Positions 18,677 through 32,032 of a stretch of 64,000 nt of DNA are shown in pieces. The DNA lies in contig JAHLWZ010000826.1 of the NCBI GenBank assembly GCA_020536535.1, positions 36,615 to 100,614 on the forward strand. The letters are read 5' to 3'. Origin of the DNA: Pelomyxa schiedti (lineage: Eukaryota > Protista > Evosea). The first letter of the stretch is position 1. Every line of letters starts with the position of its first letter. The notes under the pieces were generated by a model. It had not been told where the DNA came from. It did not search any database and saw nothing but the letters and a program-made list of their open reading frames with translations. The translations under genes were made by a program, and so were the position numbers.

Positions 18677-20316
18677 ATGGAAGAACAGAGAAGGCGTGCG
18701 TCCCACGGCGGCACCAAACAAACACAAGAAACACGCGACGAGAAGGTTTTCCGCTCAGAGGGACGTTGCACACGGAAATGTTTTTGTTTTTTGAAGTACT
18801 TTCTTCTCTTTTGTGGCGCTCTGATCTTTTTTCTGGCGACTTTGCTTGTTACTTTGGAAGCATGCGTATATTTCCACCGAGGGTTTTCCAGGTAGGTTTC
18901 TCTTTTTCGTCACCAATTCAAATTTTAAGGTTGGAGATTCCTGCCCCTGTTAAATTTTCAGATGCCAGTGTGGTGCAAGGGAGAGACTCCTCAATTTCAG
19001 TTCATACAGATTTCAATCTCCTCTCACTGCTTGTACCCAGCTCTGAGTACCACTGGACCTACGAAGATGAAGATTAATCGATTTTATATATTATTCGCTG
19101 AAAAGTGATGGGTCTCCCGCGGGCACAACTGCGACCATCGAGTACGACAGTTGGTTCGGCACTGTGCAGGTCAGGTGCCATATGACTGATGTTTCCTTCT
19201 CTCAGGGTTATGTAACACTGGTCCTTTCTTGTGCAGGGTCAGCGACAACTTACCAACGCAAAACTCACACAACCGGCGATGTTGAAGCAACCTTAGTTTG
19301 CACTACTGCCGTCAGCCTCACAAATGACTGGCGTATTGTTTGCAATCCCTCAGTGCAGGTGAGATGGACCCACCTGGAATATGGAGGTTATTTTCAAGAG
19401 CAGTTGGAAGCTTGGAAAAACTGGATCATAGAGCCCTGGCGAGTGAGCTTCTCTTTCAATCTCACATTTTACTCAGTCACACTGTTAGATCGAATCTTGG
19501 ATTTCTGAGAAATTGTCCCAAGTTCCAATACGTGAGACGTTAAACCGGATGTGGCAACATCTCAATGATGCTATTCAGATAAGCACTGTTGAGCTGTCAA
19601 ACTTCAAAGCTGAAGATGTATGGCTGCAACTAAATCCGAACGCATTGTCGGTGTCACCACTCACATTCTCTGGAGTGTGGATGCATGTTTCCATTGACCT
19701 TTCCTGCAAACCGGTCATTGCCCTTGGTTATAAGCCAGCCTCTAGCTCTCCTGTTACGGGGTGCCCAAGCTTCTCTTCCGTGATCTCTGACCGCGGAATT
19801 GATGCAGCACTGGCATTTCACCTTCCTTACACTGCATTACACATGGAAGCATCGAGGCTGCTGCCGTTTGTGATCGGACCCACTGGATTTTATAGAGCAA
19901 AAATAACAGTGAAATCTGTGCAACTTTACTCTTCAGGGAGAATGATTGTTGCCGCAGTTGATGTTGATGCCAACAAAGTGAGCAATGCCACTGGAGTACT
20001 TGATCTCTGGGGAGAACTACAATGGGACTCAGCCAACAGAAGGCTTTCTGTTACTGATGTTGACTTCCACCCAGAAACCAAGAAGTACATCGAAGGAATG
20101 TTTGCATGCACTGACTGGTTGCTCCATGACAGCCGTCTCAAGGAATTTATTTCACGTGAACTCAATTGGAACCTCGGACTTCAACTTGAAAAACTGAGGG
20201 AGCATGTGTCAGAAAACCACAGATCCTCCAGCAATGCGGACTACAGTTTTGGTCTGCACAGTTTTGACGTACAGAGTGTTGTTGCAGATGACTCGGGGAT
20301 GATCAAGTCACTCTGA
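18677..20316 (+). pseudogene. DUF4403-like gene, copy 2 (frameshift near 19075-19090, altered 3' end)
   Basis: High similarity to 3507-5255 with the same intron positions. The frame 'YEDED*' shifts to 'YYSLKSDG' across 14 nt with no GT-AG intron. Confidence 0.7.
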
Positions 20317-24050: not shown

Positions 24051-24257
24051 CAATGGGATCCAAGCGAGTTCAGAACGGCTCCACGACCTCACGTTGGTCA
24101 GGTCTGAAGCTCCTGCAAATAAAAATAAAAACGAATGTAATGTACATAGAGAGTGACAAATGTTTTAAAAACTGGTTTTCCACACACGGTTCTTACTTGA
24201 TGTTAGGTTCCGCAATTCAAAAAAGGTTTGTGTATGTCTTAACAAGCAGTGGTGGAT

Positions 24258-26716
24258 TTACGGGGTACCCTTGACCACACTAGCAGGCAGGAAGGCGCAG
24301 GACGTCGCCCAGGGTGTTTCATCCCCGGGCCAGTCTGCTGATGCTGTGCACTCCATCATACACAAAAGGTCTTCCCCTTTCGGCACTTCCTTGAGATGCA
24401 CACGGTCCAGTTTCCCTTTGTGTGTCACATTTACAACCTGAAGAACCGTGTTGGGTGTGAGGAGGGTCTCTTCCTCGGAATGTATCACAGACAGAGCACT
24501 GATATCAACACCGGAGACTTGGTCAATTTCAAAAAGAGTTTTGGGACTCTTTGTGGCCTTGTTAGTGAACATACTTGCTGTGGAGAGTTTTCTACTGCAG
24601 CTCGTGAAGGACACCCAGATGACATACTTTCCTTTCACATACTGTGTGGTGGGATCAGATGCCGCTTGAAAGTTTTCCAAGCCCCGGTACACCTTTCCTG
24701 GTTTTAGAGGGCATTTCTTGAGTGCTTGCAGGAGATACCCCGTGATATCAATGTCTATTGCGGTGGGTTTCCTATGGTGAAGTGTGTAGTTCAGGCTCTG
24801 GAAAAACAAGTCTGTGGTGTACAGTGAAACGATGCGGATTTCATCATCACTGAGCCCATACAGCCCTCTGGACCTGTTCACAACGCTCTCTACTGCAGTA
24901 TTTCTGAAGTTTGGGCTGGTCTCGAGCAGTGCTCTCAGGGGAATTGTGGGACCTTGTTCAGGGAGAGGGAAAGAGAACTTTCCTCTCACTGTGTCACGAA
25001 CCTTGACCACACATGTATCACTGTGGTTCCATCTTCTCAGAGTTATCAGTGCCCTGAAAGCTTCCGCAATGCGGGGATCGACAGCAACTTGAACTTCAGG
25101 CGTTTCTCGGCTGTTGAGGTGCTGCTGAAGGTTTTCGTCGATAGGTGAGTCCTGTACGTCAACCCTTTTCTCAAAGCGTTCCCATTTGGTTGTCCATTCT
25201 TCTGGGACAGGCACAGGAGCCATGTTTTTCCATGCAATGGTTCTTCCACAGGGTTTGGTGAGCTCTGGGTGGCGCCCTTCTGTTGTTCGTTCGTAGTAGC
25301 ACGCCAGTTGGTATTCAAAGCACAGTTTAAGCTCTTCAATCCTGAACAGTTGATCCTCTGATGGTGACCACCAGCTTGTTTCATTTCGCCGATTGTAGTG
25401 GTCCTGGCACAAGCCTTTCAATTCTGCCTTTCTTGTATTGTCCAGCTTGGCAATCTCTTGGTTCACTGCTTCTTGGTTTGGTTGCGGTATCAGGGTGCGC
25501 AGTATTCTCATTGCCCTGCCAGTTTTTGCTGGCGTTTTGGGGTCTGATAGGTACTTTTCCACTTGTATGTCGGTGAACCGGCACGTCCGAGATGTTGTGG
25601 AGCTTGCGGACCAGTCGAAAACAGTGCTACTTGGTCCAGAGATCTTGTTAATATCCCATTCAAACACGTTGAAAGAGCTCCAAGTTTCCGCAAATAGTGG
25701 CCTCTTTCCACACACAGTGTTTCCTTCGCAACCTTCAACAAGAACCCACACATTCTGACAGTGAGGGCAGCGCCTGAATGGAGAATTGTGGTTGAGATAC
25801 AGCTCGCCCTTACAGTGGTTCCTTATCTCCAGCAGTTGCCTCTTGAACTCTTTCTTCATTTCGCCACTGAAGAGGAGGCTTCCTTCACTGCCTCCCAATT
25901 CTTCTGAGAACTGGGCCTGATACTTGGGAATGAGATCGTACATTGTAGCTTTGAAGGAAAATGCAAAATCCCTCTTCGTAGCTCCCTCCATTGTATTCAT
26001 TCGTTGGGTTCCTGACTCGGTCAATTTCTGAAAGTGGCTGACGTACTTGTTGTAGATAGCTCTCATTTTCAAGTCATTTGGGGCCAAGTTGAAGTACGAA
26101 ACGAGCTGAGCCGGCGCGATTCTTACGTCGATTGGTTGGATTACATCAAGTGATTCCAGGAAAGTCATCAATTCAGCCTTTGAAGTGTCTCTGGCAGTTA
26201 CCAGAATATGGTTCAGACCCAGATCACCCGCTACGCCCATGATTTCCGCAGCAGTGATCGAAGGTATCAAGTCGCTCTTTGTGACAATCATGGCGATGTT
26301 GTGTTCAAACTCCTCAATGAATGGGGTTACGAGATCGCTGATGGCTTTCTCTACACCATCGAGGCGGTCTTTGAGGGAGCAAACCATTAAAAGGCAAGTA
26401 ACTGGCTTGAATCTCAAAGCTCCTAACAGATCCAGAGCATGATCAACACGTCCTTTTCTGGAATTGAGCCCTGGTGTATCTGCGAGCCAGTATCTATTCT
26501 CAACAGGGAATACCTGTAATTTCTGGTGTTAAAAAAATAATGTGTCAACCACCTAACCTTCGATTTTAGGGTGAATGATTCTGGAGCGTTTGAGCTGAGC
26601 CCAGTCCGTCCCGTTAGCTTTTCACACAGAGTGGACTTCCCTGAACCAACATCTCCCATCAACACAAAAAACGGAGTTGTGCCCTTGCCTCGTCCAGAAA
26701 CCACAGCCGCACTCAT
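24258..26716 (-). CDS. TRAFAC (AIG1/GIMAP- or MMR_HSR1-like) GTPase + CPHC..GC..CG module + C-terminal R-S-E mono-ADP-ribosyltransferase
   Basis: Exon 1 has G1 LMGDVGSGKST. The intron at 26514-26557 joins it in frame to YWLADTPG (G3); G4-like VTKSD follows. RRCPHCQNVWVLVEGCEGNTVCG. ART motifs: SLYT..FF..LN, VYRG, WVSFTSCS, SEEETLLTPNT.L.V. Confidence 0.85.
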
Positions 26717-27095: not shown

Positions 27096-29334
27096 TCATT
27101 CACAGGGCATCCACGCATCTGTACACACGTCCTCTGCCTCTACGTCGGTGTCAGTGATTCCCAGCATTTTCTTCGATGCTTTGACATGTAAGTCCGATGC
27201 AACAACGAACTTCATCATGTGCTCCTTGGCAAACGAGGCCGTCATTTCAGGGAACAGTCGCATGAGCATCTTCCACGTGCCAACTTGTGATCGTATTGTC
27301 TGTGGGTATATCGGGTCGGTCATTATGCCAATCTTTATGGTGGGTTAAGTATATTATGTATGAGAAGAAAACCATCATAATACCTGATGCAATGTCACAT
27401 GGAACTTGTTGATCAACCACTCTGCACAACTTTTCTTGTTATAGGTAATCAACTCACCAAGTAATTGGTTGTTATTCTTCGTCACCTGCTCTTCATCCAA
27501 GTGGAACCGCTGAATGAGCCACTTCACAACTTTCCCTGAACGAACAGAGGATGACAAGGCCAAAGAAACGTTAAATGAAGAGAAGTTGAGATGCCATGAA
27601 ATCTGCCTGGCTTGTGAGACATCACTCCTAAACAAAAGTTGGGAAATTGCATGCTCTCTGTCAGAGCTTGGGACATATGCAGAGCCAAATGTTTTCATCA
27701 GAAGCAGTGCAAGTTCCATGTATCCTTGGCGGAGTATGCAGTGAACAGCCTGACCCACAGTTTCTTCACTGATGTTCCTCACTGAGCAATTTTCCAGGAA
27801 CCATTGAATTCCACCGATTCCACCACCGTTAGAGTAACACAAAATGTCACTGAATATTCCAGCAGTCTCCCAGGAGTTTGCATTCACGAGGTCCATCACA
27901 TGGAATTTGTTGTTCAGCCAGTGCGCAACAGATGTGTTGTTATGAGAAAGGGCCTTTGAAAGGCACTGCCTCTTGTCATATTCTGTAATGCGCAGGGTCA
28001 TTTTTGTCAACAGGCACTGAAGTACTGCAACACTGTCTCTCTTGTTCCCACATACCCAAATGAATGTGGAAGGTTCCACTGTTCCAACACTGTCAGGGAA
28101 ACAAAGTATCAACCACTCGACGAGTTCTTCATCTGCAATGTGTTGCGCTACCCAACGCAGAGTGTCTTGTGTTGGTTTGATTGAAAACGCGTTTATCCAC
28201 CACCTTAGGCCTTTTGCATTGGTGATGCACTCAAGGTTGACACTTGACAATGAAAATCTTTCCTTGATCCACTGGCAGCCTTCCTCAAATTCAAACCCCG
28301 TCGATGGAGAGGATTGTATAAAATCCTTCAGTATGGTATTCCCATATGTCTGAGCCTGCCCATAGAACAGCTCTGTACAAAACCTCACAAGTTGCAAGCT
28401 AGAACTGGAAACAAATTGATGGCAATAGGGTATATCTGAGCGGTGCCTAAGAAGTTCATTGCATGCAGTAACTGCACAAGTGGAAGATGCCAGCCACTTC
28501 ACCAAATCAATGTGCCCACACCTAACAGCTGCACGAAACGGCAAAGGAAATTCCCACGGCTCTGCGCCCACTCCAAACTTTGACATCACCCACTTAACAA
28601 CCTCCAGGTGGCCGCCTTTGCATGCATCATACAACAGGCTGTACGGAACGCTCTCACTGGAGCGAATCTCCCTGATGTCATCAATCAAGTCGGGGTCGTT
28701 CACTGGCCACCTCAGTAGTGAGCAACCGCTCCAGTGTGCGCCACCACTCTCAACAAGTTCCTTTGCAATCTCAATGTGCCCTCCTATATTTGAAAAATGT
28801 AAAATAAACAAGTTATTAGTAAATACAAAGAGAGGAATACAAGAAGAATACAAGAACCTAAACAAAATAAATAAAGAAAAAAAAAGTAAAACATAATTAA
28901 CTTAATGCAAACAAATACAGAAATATTATAAATACAAATAACAGACAGAATAGACCTGCACATAAGCCCCTTAGAACAGTAATGCACTCTTTCCTGTTAT
29001 TCCTCGTTTCCTTGTTTCTCAGAATCCAATCAATGCATTTTTTGCTCCCAGCCTCTGCCGCGCACTTGAGTGCGAAATACCGCGACGTCTGAATCCTCCC
29101 ATAATCTTGGGGACACACCTCCCACAAAGTCACCTTCACTCCGCCCATCAACACGCGGCACACCCTCGGCACGAGAGGGAAGAGCGCGTCCGCAACACCC
29201 ATCAGCCAAGTGCACTGCGACGCCGTGAGCGGCACCCCGCGATTATGGGACGGCAGCACCATAGTGGCCTCTACGACGTACTCCCAAGCAATCTGAGACA
29301 CAGTCACTACGTTTCGCAGGGTTTCGTCGCACAT
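27096..29334 (-). CDS. Lineage-expanded ankyrin-like repeat protein (3 exons)
   Basis: ECITVLRGLCAG|GHIEIAKELV; LYDACKGGHLEVVKWV; AVRCGHIDLVKWL; C-terminal TWKMLMRLFP after an in-frame intron. Confidence 0.75.
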
Positions 29335-29433: not shown

Positions 29434-32032
29434 TTACTGCCATCTGACCATCCAGCTCTCGTTGGTCACCCCAGTGGGTCCATACTCCTCATAGAATGAG
29501 CGGGGGAGAAGCATATCTTCAAACACGGGAAGACTGCACAAGGTGGAACCACCAATCCAGGCAGAGTGGGCACGACTTCTGGCGTCTGGTGGCACCACTT
29601 GGATATTCATCTGGGTCGGTCCAAAAATACCCTCAAGCTCTTGTTTGAGCCTCTCATCAAAACCAGGAGCATTGCAGGTTCCACCACAGGGAACAATATT
29701 TCCAAGCAGGTTAGTTTGAATGCTTGTGTCTGTAAATGTGTTTATTACATCCCACACTGCGGTGTGCAAACCCACATGTTCAGTTTGTGCTCCAAACAGA
29801 AGGCATGGATCATAAAGTAGCTCCATGCATTGAGTCAGTTCATTGGGGGCGCAGGACGGTTCTTTTGTGGTCCCAGAAGGAAAATACATAACACTTGCCT
29901 TCTCGATTTTAAGGTTCTCAATATAACTCAGTTGAGGGCACCCAGTCCAAAGAATCCGGCACATAAGGGAATCAAAGGAGTGGAGGTAATCAGTGATATC
30001 CTTTCCCCCAAACTTCAAAACCCTGCCTTGCACGGGGGTTCCGTCAATAACGGGAACGCACTGTATGGCACCATGACCAACATCAACCGCGATCCCAGTA
30101 GTTGTACCATGTGCCATAAGAGCCAATGCATGTTGCGAAGCAAAGTAGAGTGCTGGCACTTTGAAACACTCAAACATGATTTCAGCCATCTTAGCGCCGC
30201 TTTCCTTCGTGGTATTCACATATTGAGTAAGCAGGACGGGCTGGTCAGTTGGCTCAGCTCTGAGCTTCTGCAAGAATTTATTCAGTAAGGCTTCAAAATA
30301 TTAAATTGGGGTTTCTCTCACCTTGTAGCCTTTTCTCAATACATTCTCAACTTCCTCCCAATTTTGAATCACGCCGCGGTCAACAGCGTTTGATGCATAA
30401 TCACCATCGTAACGATGATAGGCCATTGGAGCTTCGTAACCAGCATAACCAAACTTGGAAGAATGGCTGCCTATGTCAATAACTACAGTGTGACCTTCCC
30501 CAGCATTGCACGGCTCAGAAAAAACTTGGTTTGTTGGAAAGTGGGGTTCTTCAGTAGTACAGCTATTGCGAGCCTGACGTGTCTCACACTGTTGTTGAGC
30601 TTCCATCTCACAAGCAGAACGTATTTCTTCCGCAAGAATCTCCGCCAAGGTTCCACCTGGCACTGGCCATATAAACCGCTTTCTGAAGAATAGTAAATCC
30701 TCAAGTTCTTCCCTTAATTCCGTTGACCCCAATGCAACAGCTTTTTCAAAGTATATGATTGCTTTGTTTATGTCATCCACACCTGGTACACCATTTCCGT
30801 CACGGTAAAGTACCCCAAGCTAAACATTGTTAGCAACGTAAAGTGAGATTAAAGAACTACACACCGCTCCAATGCTCCTCACATCTCCTTTGTCAGCGGC
30901 ACTTAGAAGAAGCCCAATGATATGATCAGAAAGTGAAGTTCTGTCAGGATCTGAGGCGCACGAAGATTGCACCGCCTCGGTCAAAGAGTACCCTGCACCC
31001 ATGAGAATCACATTATGGAACAGGATATCCGCAGCTGCGACATCTCTTTCAAGTGTATAGTCCCCACAGAATAGAGCGCATGCAAGTTGCGACATGGCCT
31101 CTTTGGAACCAAGATCTGCAGCTCTTCTGAGGTGCTTGAGGAATTTAGATTTGCTTCCACTGATTTTGTAAAACATTCCAAGTATAAACTCGGCCCCGGC
31201 ATGCCCCCTCGCTACTGCGGCCTTTGCCAAGAATTCGAAGTCGGGAGACTTACGGTGAAAGAGAACTGCTAGGAAAATAGGCTCAAGAAGCGCCTGGATG
31301 AAGAACAAACGGTATTCTGGGGGAACAGAATAGTGTAGGAAGTCCTCAAAATCTGAGCCTGGTTCTTGAAAGAAGTTTTTGAGGCGAGTGAAGAAAAGAA
31401 GCTGTAGAAAGTGCTTTCCTTCGTAGCGCTCACATGCCCTGTTCAAACAGCGCTGTATTTCTTCCTGGAACAGAAGTCACCAAAGACAGGAACGAGATTG
31501 GAAAACCTTGCTGTAAGTAAGGGCAGAAAGACCCAATTCCTCATATCGGAGCAAAATGAGTGGGCTAAAAGCCTCTTTGAAGAAGTTGAGGCCCTTCCCC
31601 GGTATCAACAATGAAAGAAGCACTCCTGGTAGCGGAAAGTCGATATCGCACACTGCAGCATCCAAAAGTGACTGCACAGCTTCAATGTACTGTCCAGAAC
31701 ACGCTTGCCATAGTCCCTCACAAGTGAGCTCAATCTTGTCCACTTTTTTTTTGTTTTTTTAGCTTTAGTACAACAGACAAGATGTACACACAAAAGGTGA
31801 TCGTGACAATTATCCTCCTTATCTCCGGAGGTAAGTCCCAGCGAAGGTTCGTTGCCATAGCCGTCACAACAACTCCATCAACCTGTGGGGTATGTCCTTG
31901 TGTTGTGGGTGTTGGCGTGCAGCACAGCAGGAATGAAACAGCTCGAGTCCTCCATGGCTCAGGTGCACAGTCCTGTGGCCAAACTGGTATGTCTTTTTGG
32001 GGTGTCATAAGAAGCGGATACAATGCATCCAT
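29434..32032 (-). CDS. Spliced fusion gene: F-box-like N-terminus + Sel1 repeats + divergent actin/ARP domain
   Basis: LPPEIRRII. Sel1 repeats AEFILGMFY...LRRAADLGSKEAMSQLA and GA|LGVLYRDGNGVPGVDDINKAIIYFEKAVALG (intron 30820-30864). The same exon continues into actin VVIDIGSHSSKFGYAG. Intron 30268-30321 leads to PVLLT...KMAEIMFECFKVPALY...TGIAVDVGHG...WIGGSTLCSL. Confidence 0.8.

Follow-up and report, generated by a model that had tools for sequence, protein, structure and literature searches.

GTPases of the GIMAP, Toc, septin-like and dynamin-like groups dimerise or oligomerise on binding guanosine triphosphate (GTP). In the Pseudomonas aeruginosa effectors ExoS and ExoT, a G-protein-signalling domain is joined to a C-terminal ADP-ribosyltransferase (ART) on one chain. 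Among bacterial toxins, Tre1 of Serratia proteamaculans (solved with Tri1 as the Tre1–Tri1 pair, PDB entry 6DRH), which is delivered by type VI secretion, has an R-S-ExE site and ADP-ribosylates FtsZ at Arg174; an ExE motif typically marks ARTs that modify arginine (PMC11606950). Bacterial GTPase-centred conflict systems provide a comparison for the logic of a nucleotide switch (PMC7159879). Here we describe a gene of the anaerobic amoeba Pelomyxa schiedti whose predicted product joins a GTPase and a zinc ribbon to an ART. It lies on the minus strand at 24258–26716 of a stretch of 64,000 nucleotides (nt), called the window below (contig JAHLWZ010000826.1, positions 36,615–100,614, assembly GCA_020536535.1), and had been picked out from the letters of the sequence before any database search (the original prediction).

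Domain architecture

The gene encodes, in one frame, a P-loop GTPase, a helical region, a putative zinc module and an R-S-ExE ART with intact catalytic motifs, as the original prediction had proposed. The combination of the GTPase/zinc-ribbon module with an ART is a new domain architecture, so far found only in P. schiedti: among all relatives recovered, the ART was attached only in this species, and the literature yielded no paper on such a GTPase–ART fusion or on ADP-ribosylation in Pelomyxa. Six annotated paralogues (P0001 and P0003 to P0007) were 57–72% identical to the window protein over the whole length. The parts of the gene and its product of 804 amino acids (aa), with the basis of each assignment, are as follows.

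24258–26716, minus strand: whole coding region from ATG to TAA, encoding the 804-aa GTPase/zinc-ribbon/ART protein (sequence reading, translation and paralogues)
26558–26716, minus strand: exon 1, 53 codons, with a short N-terminal tail, the P-loop GDVGSGKS (G1) and the switch-I residue Thr49 (sequence, P-loop family matches)
26514–26557, minus strand: intron of 44 nt, GT..AG, phase 0 (sequence, paralogue introns and gap-free homologue alignment)
24258–26513, minus strand: exon 2, 751 codons and the TAA stop at 24258–24260 (translation)
26103–26680, minus strand: predicted G domain, residues 13–190, with G1 GDVGSGKS, G3 DTPG and G4 TKSD; the span includes the intron (Pfam, profiles, Foldseek)
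25785–26102, minus strand: predicted three-helix stalk, residues 191–296 (AlphaFold2 model of P0001; 74% mean paralogue identity)
25698–25784, minus strand: predicted zinc-ribbon knuckles CPHC-x8-GC-x5-CG, residues 297–325, with C302, C305, C315 and C321 (family alignment)
25278–25697, minus strand: fast-diverging, mostly helical region between the putative zinc-ligand sites, residues 326–465 (38% mean pairwise identity)
25197–25277, minus strand: predicted second half of the zinc module, PELTKPCGRTIAWKNMAPV, residues 466–492, with C475 and W481 (family alignment)
24873–25196, minus strand: linker conserved among paralogues, residues 493–600 (57% mean identity; low model confidence)
24378–24872, minus strand: predicted R-S-ExE ADP-ribosyltransferase domain, residues 601–765, with R663 in VYRG, S-x-S in FTSCS and E733-x-E735 in SEEE (Pfam, PDB, Foldseek)
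24261–24377, minus strand: C-terminal tail of 39 residues, with the Cys-rich DLLCMMEC and the terminal FLPASVVKGTP (paralogue comparison)
24153–24257, minus strand: 3' untranslated region of at least 105 nt, within the RNA-seq contig L003 (Logan assembly of SRR23919869)

Every motif quoted in the original prediction is present in the spliced protein: GDVGSGKS at residue 21, DTPG at 65, TKSD at 131, CPHC at 302 followed by x8-GC-x5-CG (302–322), CGRTIAWKNMAPV at 475, VYRG at 661, SFTSCS at 688 and SEEE at 732. Since neither a signal peptide nor a membrane segment was predicted, the protein is likely cytosolic, as had been proposed. No Pfam or PDB match was obtained for the linker (residues 493–600). 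The tail was 79% identical to the window copy in P0001 and P0003 and 45% identical in P0004, while it aligned poorly, at 10–15% identity, in P0005 and P0006. In ExoS and ExoT, a cofactor-binding motif is located where the window protein has this tail.

Gene model and splicing

Translation starts at the ATG at 26716, with an in-frame TGA 9 nt upstream, and exon 1 (26716–26558) ends in phase 0 after SFTLKSK. The two predicted exons, joined as they stand, give the 804-aa product; with the intron retained, the frame stops after 97 aa. Alignments of relatives to the window by tblastn were interrupted at 26555/26516, i.e. at the intron. A phase-0 GT..AG intron of 44–85 nt occupies the homologous codon in five of the six annotated paralogue models (P0001, P0003, P0005, P0006 and P0007). 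In P0004 (L010 5427-7958), the annotated junction falls 13–17 codons later, and the shared intron is read through, which adds residues that no relative has; this divergent placement is probably an annotation error. No gap over residues 53|54 separated the spliced protein from the intronless bacterial homologue P0008, the metagenomic P0010, P0011 and P0012 or a protein of Clytia hemisphaerica.

The remaining introns at the family loci in the P. schiedti genome measure 40–60 nt, and 44 nt is an ordinary intron size for this genome, in which 98.4% of introns are GT-AG (PMC8887013). Relative to the genome average of 7.43 introns per gene (PMC8887013), the single intron makes the gene intron-poor. 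The claim that the 44-nt intron at 26514–26557 joins G1 to G3 in frame was borne out by the paralogue introns, the tblastn break and the gap-free homologue alignment, and the two-exon model describes a real nuclear gene of P. schiedti.

The ADP-ribosyltransferase domain

By its motifs and modelled fold, the C-terminus is a genuine R-S-ExE ADP-ribosyltransferase of the bacterial-toxin type, which places the protein in the R-S-E (cholera-toxin-like, ARTC) superfamily. With 40.2 bits (E=3.2e-10), it clears the 22.3-bit cut-off of the Pfam ART model (PF01129). So do three of the five paralogues that bear an ART (23.6–46.2 bits); P0006 reached 20.8 bits and P0004 gave no match at E<=0.01. Chain B of 6DRE/6DRH (Tre1) was the best match among PDB sequences, with E=2e-4 for the single sequence and 6e-9 for the paralogue profile. 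It was followed by Vis (4e-4) and, non-significantly, ExoT (E 0.2). The HMMER alignments placed VYRG, FTSCS and EEE opposite YRG, STS and ExE of Tre1. Identity to Tre1 is about 22%.

A Foldseek search with an AlphaFold2 model of the window ART, of moderate confidence, matched 118 PDB chains at E<=1e-3, the best 50 of which were all ADP-ribosyltransferases. Tre1 led (E=7e-11, TM-score 0.70–0.77), followed by Vis, ExoT/ExoS, XopAI, HopU1 and C3; vertebrate ARTs were absent from these 50. The ART fold was thus recovered where the original prediction had placed it (approximately 24390–24860), and its catalytic set of VYRG, SFTSCS and SEEE (E-x-E) proved intact on alignment with the Tre1 motifs and with the Pfam ART cut-off passed. 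Because all catalytic residues are intact, the domain most likely transfers ADP-ribose from nicotinamide adenine dinucleotide (NAD+) to arginine in protein targets.

A word search with the 227-aa ART region returned no stand-alone relatives, and no viral or metagenome contig was matched when the ART alignment was used for pattern scans. No close ART relative was recovered outside the Pelomyxa family, and the nearest structures were all bacterial toxins or effectors. Membership in XopAI is excluded by its weak match, at 19.7 bits against a cut-off of 300.

Tre1 is the nearest solved relative by both sequence and fold (PDB 6DRE/6DRH) and has the same R-S-ExE catalytic set, but it is a toxin secreted by bacteria, equipped with a PAAR-type delivery part and accompanied by a cognate immunity/hydrolase gene. 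The window ART, in contrast, ends a eukaryotic GTPase whose gene has an intron, with neither a delivery part nor an adjacent immunity-like gene. Pfam detected no PAAR or Rhs delivery domain in the window protein, the neighbours are an ankyrin-repeat gene and actin, and the protein is not a member of the type VI secretion toxins. ExoS and ExoT of P. aeruginosa, Vis, HopU1, XopAI and C3 share the ART fold and catalytic motifs; ExoS and ExoT, however, are injected effectors that carry a GTPase-activating protein domain acting on host GTPases and have no GTPase of their own. With the vertebrate ecto-ARTs, the founders of PF01129, the window protein shares the R-S-ExE motifs and a score above the gathering cut-off. 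The ecto-ARTs are secreted or anchored by glycosylphosphatidylinositol and have conserved disulfides, whereas the window protein lacks a signal peptide.

The GTPase/stalk/zinc-ribbon family

Judged by sequence, residues 1–492 (the N-module) are a member of a widespread, mainly eukaryotic and hitherto unnamed family of predicted GTPase/stalk/zinc-ribbon proteins. To survey its extent, 1.84 billion cluster representatives were scanned in full with HMMER, the query being P0008, a bacterial homologue that has no effector. The scan returned 350 proteins at E<=1e-3 and, at E<=1e-10, 147 representatives of clusters formed at 50% identity. Most members have approximately 400–480 aa and were matched over the whole module. 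In a typical member, G1 lies near residue 15, G3 near 60, CPxCGxVWxKxEGCDGxTTC near 305 and CGxxIxWxxM near 385. Named members came from Tetrahymena utriculariae, Clytia hemisphaerica and EukProt; of the others, one was on a contig with a reverse transcriptase of the long interspersed nuclear element type and some were on megabase-size contigs. With the window protein as the query, BLASTP gave E-values of 1.8e-123 for P0011, 6.9e-63 for P0008 and 4.3e-16 for the Clytia protein P0053. A word search with the family profile was dominated by generic P-loop words, and its matches were limited to the Pelomyxa paralogues, GIMAP/AIG1 proteins and two relatives from metagenomes.

An alignment of 54 members (A1) showed no variation at the P-loop Gly and Lys, at the G3 Asp and Pro or at three Cys. 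Conservation was at least 90% at two further Cys, at the switch-I Thr, at the G4 Thr and Asp and at two Trp. The window protein retains all 9 invariant and 14 near-invariant positions. C302, C305 and C321 were found in 54/54 members, C475 in 53/54 and C315 in 52/54. The original prediction had described a Cys/His module; a metal-type module is present, but since the His of CPHC occurs in only 26/54 members, it is a Cys5 rather than a Cys/His module. The distance from the fourth to the fifth Cys is 173 aa here versus approximately 65–80 aa in typical members, an excess of about 100 residues in the Pelomyxa proteins. Outside its G domain, the family matched no model in the Pfam library used, and no Pfam domain was detected in the C-terminal extensions of ten long members.

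Five genes stand in tandem over 19 kb on ENA contig ctg56552 (155 kb; L005 46-18871), which is probably eukaryotic. The representative search recovered at least three of the five as family members, while for the others the annotation shows only G-domain matches; some have duplicated G domains (956–1193 aa). Local expansion of the family is therefore not confined to Pelomyxa.

A pattern scan based on a 7-sequence alignment (A2) found at least one carrier among prokaryotic species-representative genomes, a metagenome-assembled genome of 31% GC labelled 'uncultured Myxococcales'. Scans with this alignment matched no viral contig and one metagenome contig. The bacterial copy, P0008 (CAZBMJ010000014.1, L001/L007 2959-4320), has an N-terminal hydrophobic segment and adjoins bioB/F/D/A-like biotin genes and an ankyrin-repeat gene. 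By GC content and gene set, its contig looks more like that of an intracellular protist associate than that of a typical myxobacterium. P0008 and its 63%-identical relative P0009 shared 34–41% identity with the Pelomyxa clade, to which they are closer than to the rest of the family, so the bacterial N-module was probably acquired by eukaryote-to-bacterium transfer.

Affiliation of the G domain

The G domain has the canonical TRAFAC motif order (GDVGSGKS at 21, switch-I T49, DTPG at 65 and TKSD at 131). Pfam MMR_HSR1 exceeded its cut-off in four of the six paralogues and came within 0.2 bits of it in P0007. AIG1 (PF04548) stayed below its cut-off of 27 bits in five of the six (16.9–24.1 bits), with no match at E<=0.01 in P0007 or in the exon pieces of the window gene, which were scanned separately. 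Against PDB sequences, the family profile matched EngA/Der (3e-13) ahead of GIMAP4 (2e-8), followed by IF-2, GIMAP2, FeoB, Toc, Era and septin; matches to solved proteins were confined to the first ~185 positions of the profile. Against a large protein collection, the best matches of the profile outside the family were GIMAP8-like/AIG1 proteins (1e-18 to 5e-13).

The fold of the N-module was modelled with AlphaFold2 on full-length P0001, which is 72% identical to the window protein. The predicted local distance difference test (pLDDT) score was >90 in the G domain and in helices 197–223, 226–255 and 259–289, and 60–90 in the zinc region. In a Foldseek search with this model, GIMAP7, GIMAP5, GIMAP2 and GIMAP1 took ranks 1–7, 9 and 13 (E=2.9e-7 to 5.8e-5), the alignments covering the G domain and the following helices. 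Other matches included a GBP-like protein, FeoB, Toc34, atlastin and IRGs.

The label 'GIMAP-like GTPase' in the original prediction therefore holds for the modelled fold, led by GIMAP7/5/2, and for the outside matches of the profile, but not by the Pfam criterion, with AIG1 below its cut-off and EngA/Der ranked above GIMAP4. In our reading, the G domain folds most like, and would work like, the GIMAP/AIG1–Toc branch of TRAFAC GTPases; having failed the AIG1 sequence criterion, it was not filed as a GIMAP. Human GIMAP7, GIMAP5 and GIMAP2 represent the nearest fold, and both families are patchy and expanded in particular lineages. The GIMAPs differ in having neither a zinc ribbon nor an enzymatic effector domain, and the window family fails the AIG1 cut-off.

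Paralogues in Pelomyxa schiedti

Two of the paralogue loci are adjacent on one contig and three on another, with glycosidases and genes for proteins without assignment as neighbours. P0001 (L008 8246-11637) and P0003 (L009 10916-13886) are each followed by a NAGLU gene, which indicates a segmental duplication that carried both genes; no NAGLU match was found among the open reading frames (ORFs) scanned around the window copy. Approximately 4 kb upstream of the tandem P0005/P0003 lies a gene for a 1785-aa protein with Metallophos, LRR and caspase-like Peptidase_C14 domains (L009 1-962, JAHLWZ010000863.1), possibly another switch-effector protein near the family.

Mean pairwise identity over six copies was 70% in the G domain, 74% in the stalk and 74% and 71% in the two zinc parts, compared with 57% in the linker, 52% in the ART and 38% in the insert (326–465). 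The window copy has an intact catalytic set (Arg, S-x-S and ExE), as have P0001 and P0003. P0005 also has the full set, but its annotated product terminates inside the ART domain. P0004 lacks the Arg and the ExE, and P0006 lacks the ExE.

In P0007 (L010 8066-11301), the GTPase/stalk/zinc module is followed by a low-complexity Ser/Lys-rich stretch of ~350 aa and a C-terminal part of ~250 aa that is unrelated to the ART, has seven introns of 40–60 nt and gave no Pfam or PDB match. Either the effector has truly been exchanged in P0007 or its gene model is a merger. The original prediction had suggested a search for homologues that keep the GTPase and exchange the effector: P0007, with its different C-terminus, is a candidate for such a swap, but the ten long family members, whose C-terminal extensions matched no Pfam domain, supplied none.

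Genomic context and expression

The six closest proteins in the protein search were each annotated as 'hypothetical protein Pelo_...' of P. schiedti. Upstream of the gene, on the same strand, are an ORF of 496 aa with ankyrin repeats (27375–28865, minus strand; Ank_2, E=1.7e-13) and an ORF resembling the C-terminal part of actin (29434–30273, minus strand; E=4.7e-47). The GC content of the gene (48.4%) matches that of the window (48.1%). Given the Pelomyxa paralogues, the ankyrin and actin neighbours and the matching GC, the window is nuclear DNA of the amoeba and not of a prokaryotic partner. Elsewhere in the window, an ORF of 267 aa (19513–20316, plus strand) matched DUF4403 (E=1.8e-31, profile positions 163–405 of 425) and may be one exon of a larger gene.

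A contig in the Logan assembly of run SRR23919869 (L003) corresponds to window positions 26163..24153 with 99.95% identity over 2011 nt. The run belongs to SRR23919866–SRR23919877, single-cell transcriptome runs of P. schiedti (PMC10579272). This RNA-seq-derived contig extends from residue ~170 to the 3' untranslated region, so that it carries the ART together with the stalk, the zinc module and the last part of the G domain, and the 3' 2 kb of the gene is expressed. As to the claim that GTPase and ART share one transcript, the contig supports it for the stretch between the last part of the G domain and the ART inclusive but stops short of exon 1.

Proposed function and alternatives

We propose that the protein is a GTP-gated sensor-effector in a conflict or symbiont-control setting, and we give this proposal about an even chance of being right. 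The original prediction had likewise read the protein as a sensor-effector with an ART output gated by the GTPase, a plausible role. The G domain would dimerise or oligomerise on GTP, as its nearest structural relatives do, possibly on a membrane or a particle recognised through the variable insert and the zinc ribbon, and this self-association would set where and when the ART modifies arginines on its targets. The protein would belong to a small sensor-effector family that is diversifying and is directed against intracellular microbes or controls them. Circumstantial support for a conflict role comes from four points: the lineage-specific expansion with tandem copies, the fast-diverging insert, the degenerate or swapped effectors and the bacterial-toxin relatives of the ART. 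By analogy, we infer GTP binding and hydrolysis, oligomerisation, coupling of the GTPase to the ART, arginine specificity, targets and biological role.

Immune effectors gated by an NTPase (NLR/STAND, IRG/GBP) are comparable in coupling a toxic enzyme to a nucleotide switch, by fusion or by control, and in the diversification of their families; IRG, GBP-like and atlastin proteins also appear among the Foldseek matches of the P0001 model. The window protein differs from NLR/STAND proteins in having a small TRAFAC G domain, no NACHT/NB-ARC and no LRR, WD40 or TPR sensor. Pfam gave only sub-threshold P-loop cross-matches in the window protein and its paralogues, and the protein is not a member of the STAND NTPases. 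PADLOC returned no match for the exon-2 protein, searched without the P-loop exon, and weak LeoA/LeoBC/TRIP13 matches over the P-loop region of P0001 and P0008.

Several observations weigh against the sensor-effector proposal. Its immune component is plausible and rests on analogy and family dynamics, and the GTPase and ART roles are likewise plausible predictions, throughout the N-module family and in the window ART. By sequence, the G domain is assigned ambiguously, as either Era/EngA-like or AIG1-like. The AlphaFold2 model of the last 299 residues, one of five models, had a mean pLDDT of 53.5 (55–80 in the core), and in the full-length P0001 model the ART half scored <50, so that contacts between GTPase and ART are not readable. 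The RNA-seq contig starts inside exon 2 and does not reach the intron; with no intron in its stretch, it could in principle be carried-over genomic DNA. A survey of the neighbours of the window copy and of the paralogue loci found no adjoining ADP-ribosylhydrolase or macro-domain gene. Matches to STAND, AAA and ABC models of Pfam in long family members were rejected as NLR-type fusions, being mostly P-loop cross-matches.

A housekeeping role, in which the GTPase module places an endogenous arginine ART on a membrane, the cytoskeleton or a vesicle for ordinary reversible signalling, appears unlikely, though less so than the other alternatives. The N-module family is broad and its members mostly have no recognisable effector, so the ancestral role of the module need not be immune. 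Relatives of the GIMAP, Toc, septin and atlastin types act on membranes and organelles, the GC content of the gene equals that of its surroundings, and no known challenge accompanied its expression. Lineage-specific expansion, rapid divergence of the insert and paralogues with lost catalytic residues or a replaced domain would, however, be unusual for a housekeeping enzyme, and the ART has its nearest relatives exclusively among toxins and effectors, not among eukaryotic regulatory ARTs. An artefact or a dead gene (contaminating bacterial DNA, a wrongly joined model or a pseudogene in decay) is largely refuted, with a next to negligible probability. The single intron against an average of 7.43 (PMC8887013), the lack of a full-length 804-aa product in the protein search and the degeneration of some paralogues point that way. 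They are opposed by the 751-codon open frame of exon 2, its actin and ankyrin flanks in a 64-kb eukaryotic stretch, the canonical intron at a position shared with the paralogues, the GC content matching the surroundings, an RNA-derived contig over 2 kb and the retention of all family-invariant and catalytic residues.

Two further alternatives give the ART a more specific task. In the first, itself a special case of the sensor-effector proposal, a domesticated Tre1-like ART aimed by the GTPase/zinc-ribbon part would ADP-ribosylate proteins of cytosolic prokaryotic endosymbionts or of escaped prey and limit their division. Tre1, the nearest solved relative, modifies FtsZ Arg174 and blocks bacterial division. 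The protein is predicted to be cytosolic, and Ca. Syntrophus and Ca. Methanoregula live free in the cytosol of P. schiedti (PMC10579272). The similarity to Tre1 is remote, however (22% identity, E=6e-9 by profile), so its target specificity cannot be transferred; localisation and target are themselves deductions, and the ART-bearing family is so far known from one species. We consider this version distinctly unlikely. Alternatively, the ART, once activated, might mainly hydrolyse NAD+ or modify an essential host protein and kill the infected cell, as TIR/SIR2 effectors do. NTPase-gated NAD-consuming effectors are a recurrent design, and R-S-E ARTs often have NAD-glycohydrolase side activity. 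The intact ExE motif of ARTT type and the Tre1-, ExoS- and HopU1-like relatives nevertheless point to protein-arginine transfer, and altruistic death would be without obvious benefit in a solitary amoeba, which makes such a suicide effector very unlikely.

Significance

The analysis brought out a large unnamed eukaryotic family, with at least 147 clusters at 50% identity. For this family, whose N-module had no function attached, the ART fusion is the first readable output domain and a hint at the job of the module. In the version given below, with a domesticated Tre1-like ART, the ~450-aa GTPase/zinc-ribbon family would be an unrecognised, widespread module of eukaryotic cell-autonomous immunity. 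The fusion would also be a further case in which a eukaryotic nucleotide-switch protein has acquired a toxin domain of bacterial type, with the design logic of NLR- and TIR-type immunity.

Few eukaryotes harbour several prokaryotes free in the cytosol as this host does, and a host-encoded relative of an FtsZ-targeting toxin is for that reason an obvious candidate for host–symbiont control. There is a small chance that Pelomyxa, bound in an obligate consortium with cytosolic bacteria and a methanogen, has domesticated an interbacterial Tre1-like arginine ART and wired it to a GIMAP-like GTPase/zinc-ribbon module, the joined protein being one that polices the division or numbers of its endosymbionts; if so, the protein would be a host-encoded, toxin-derived enzyme of symbiont control.

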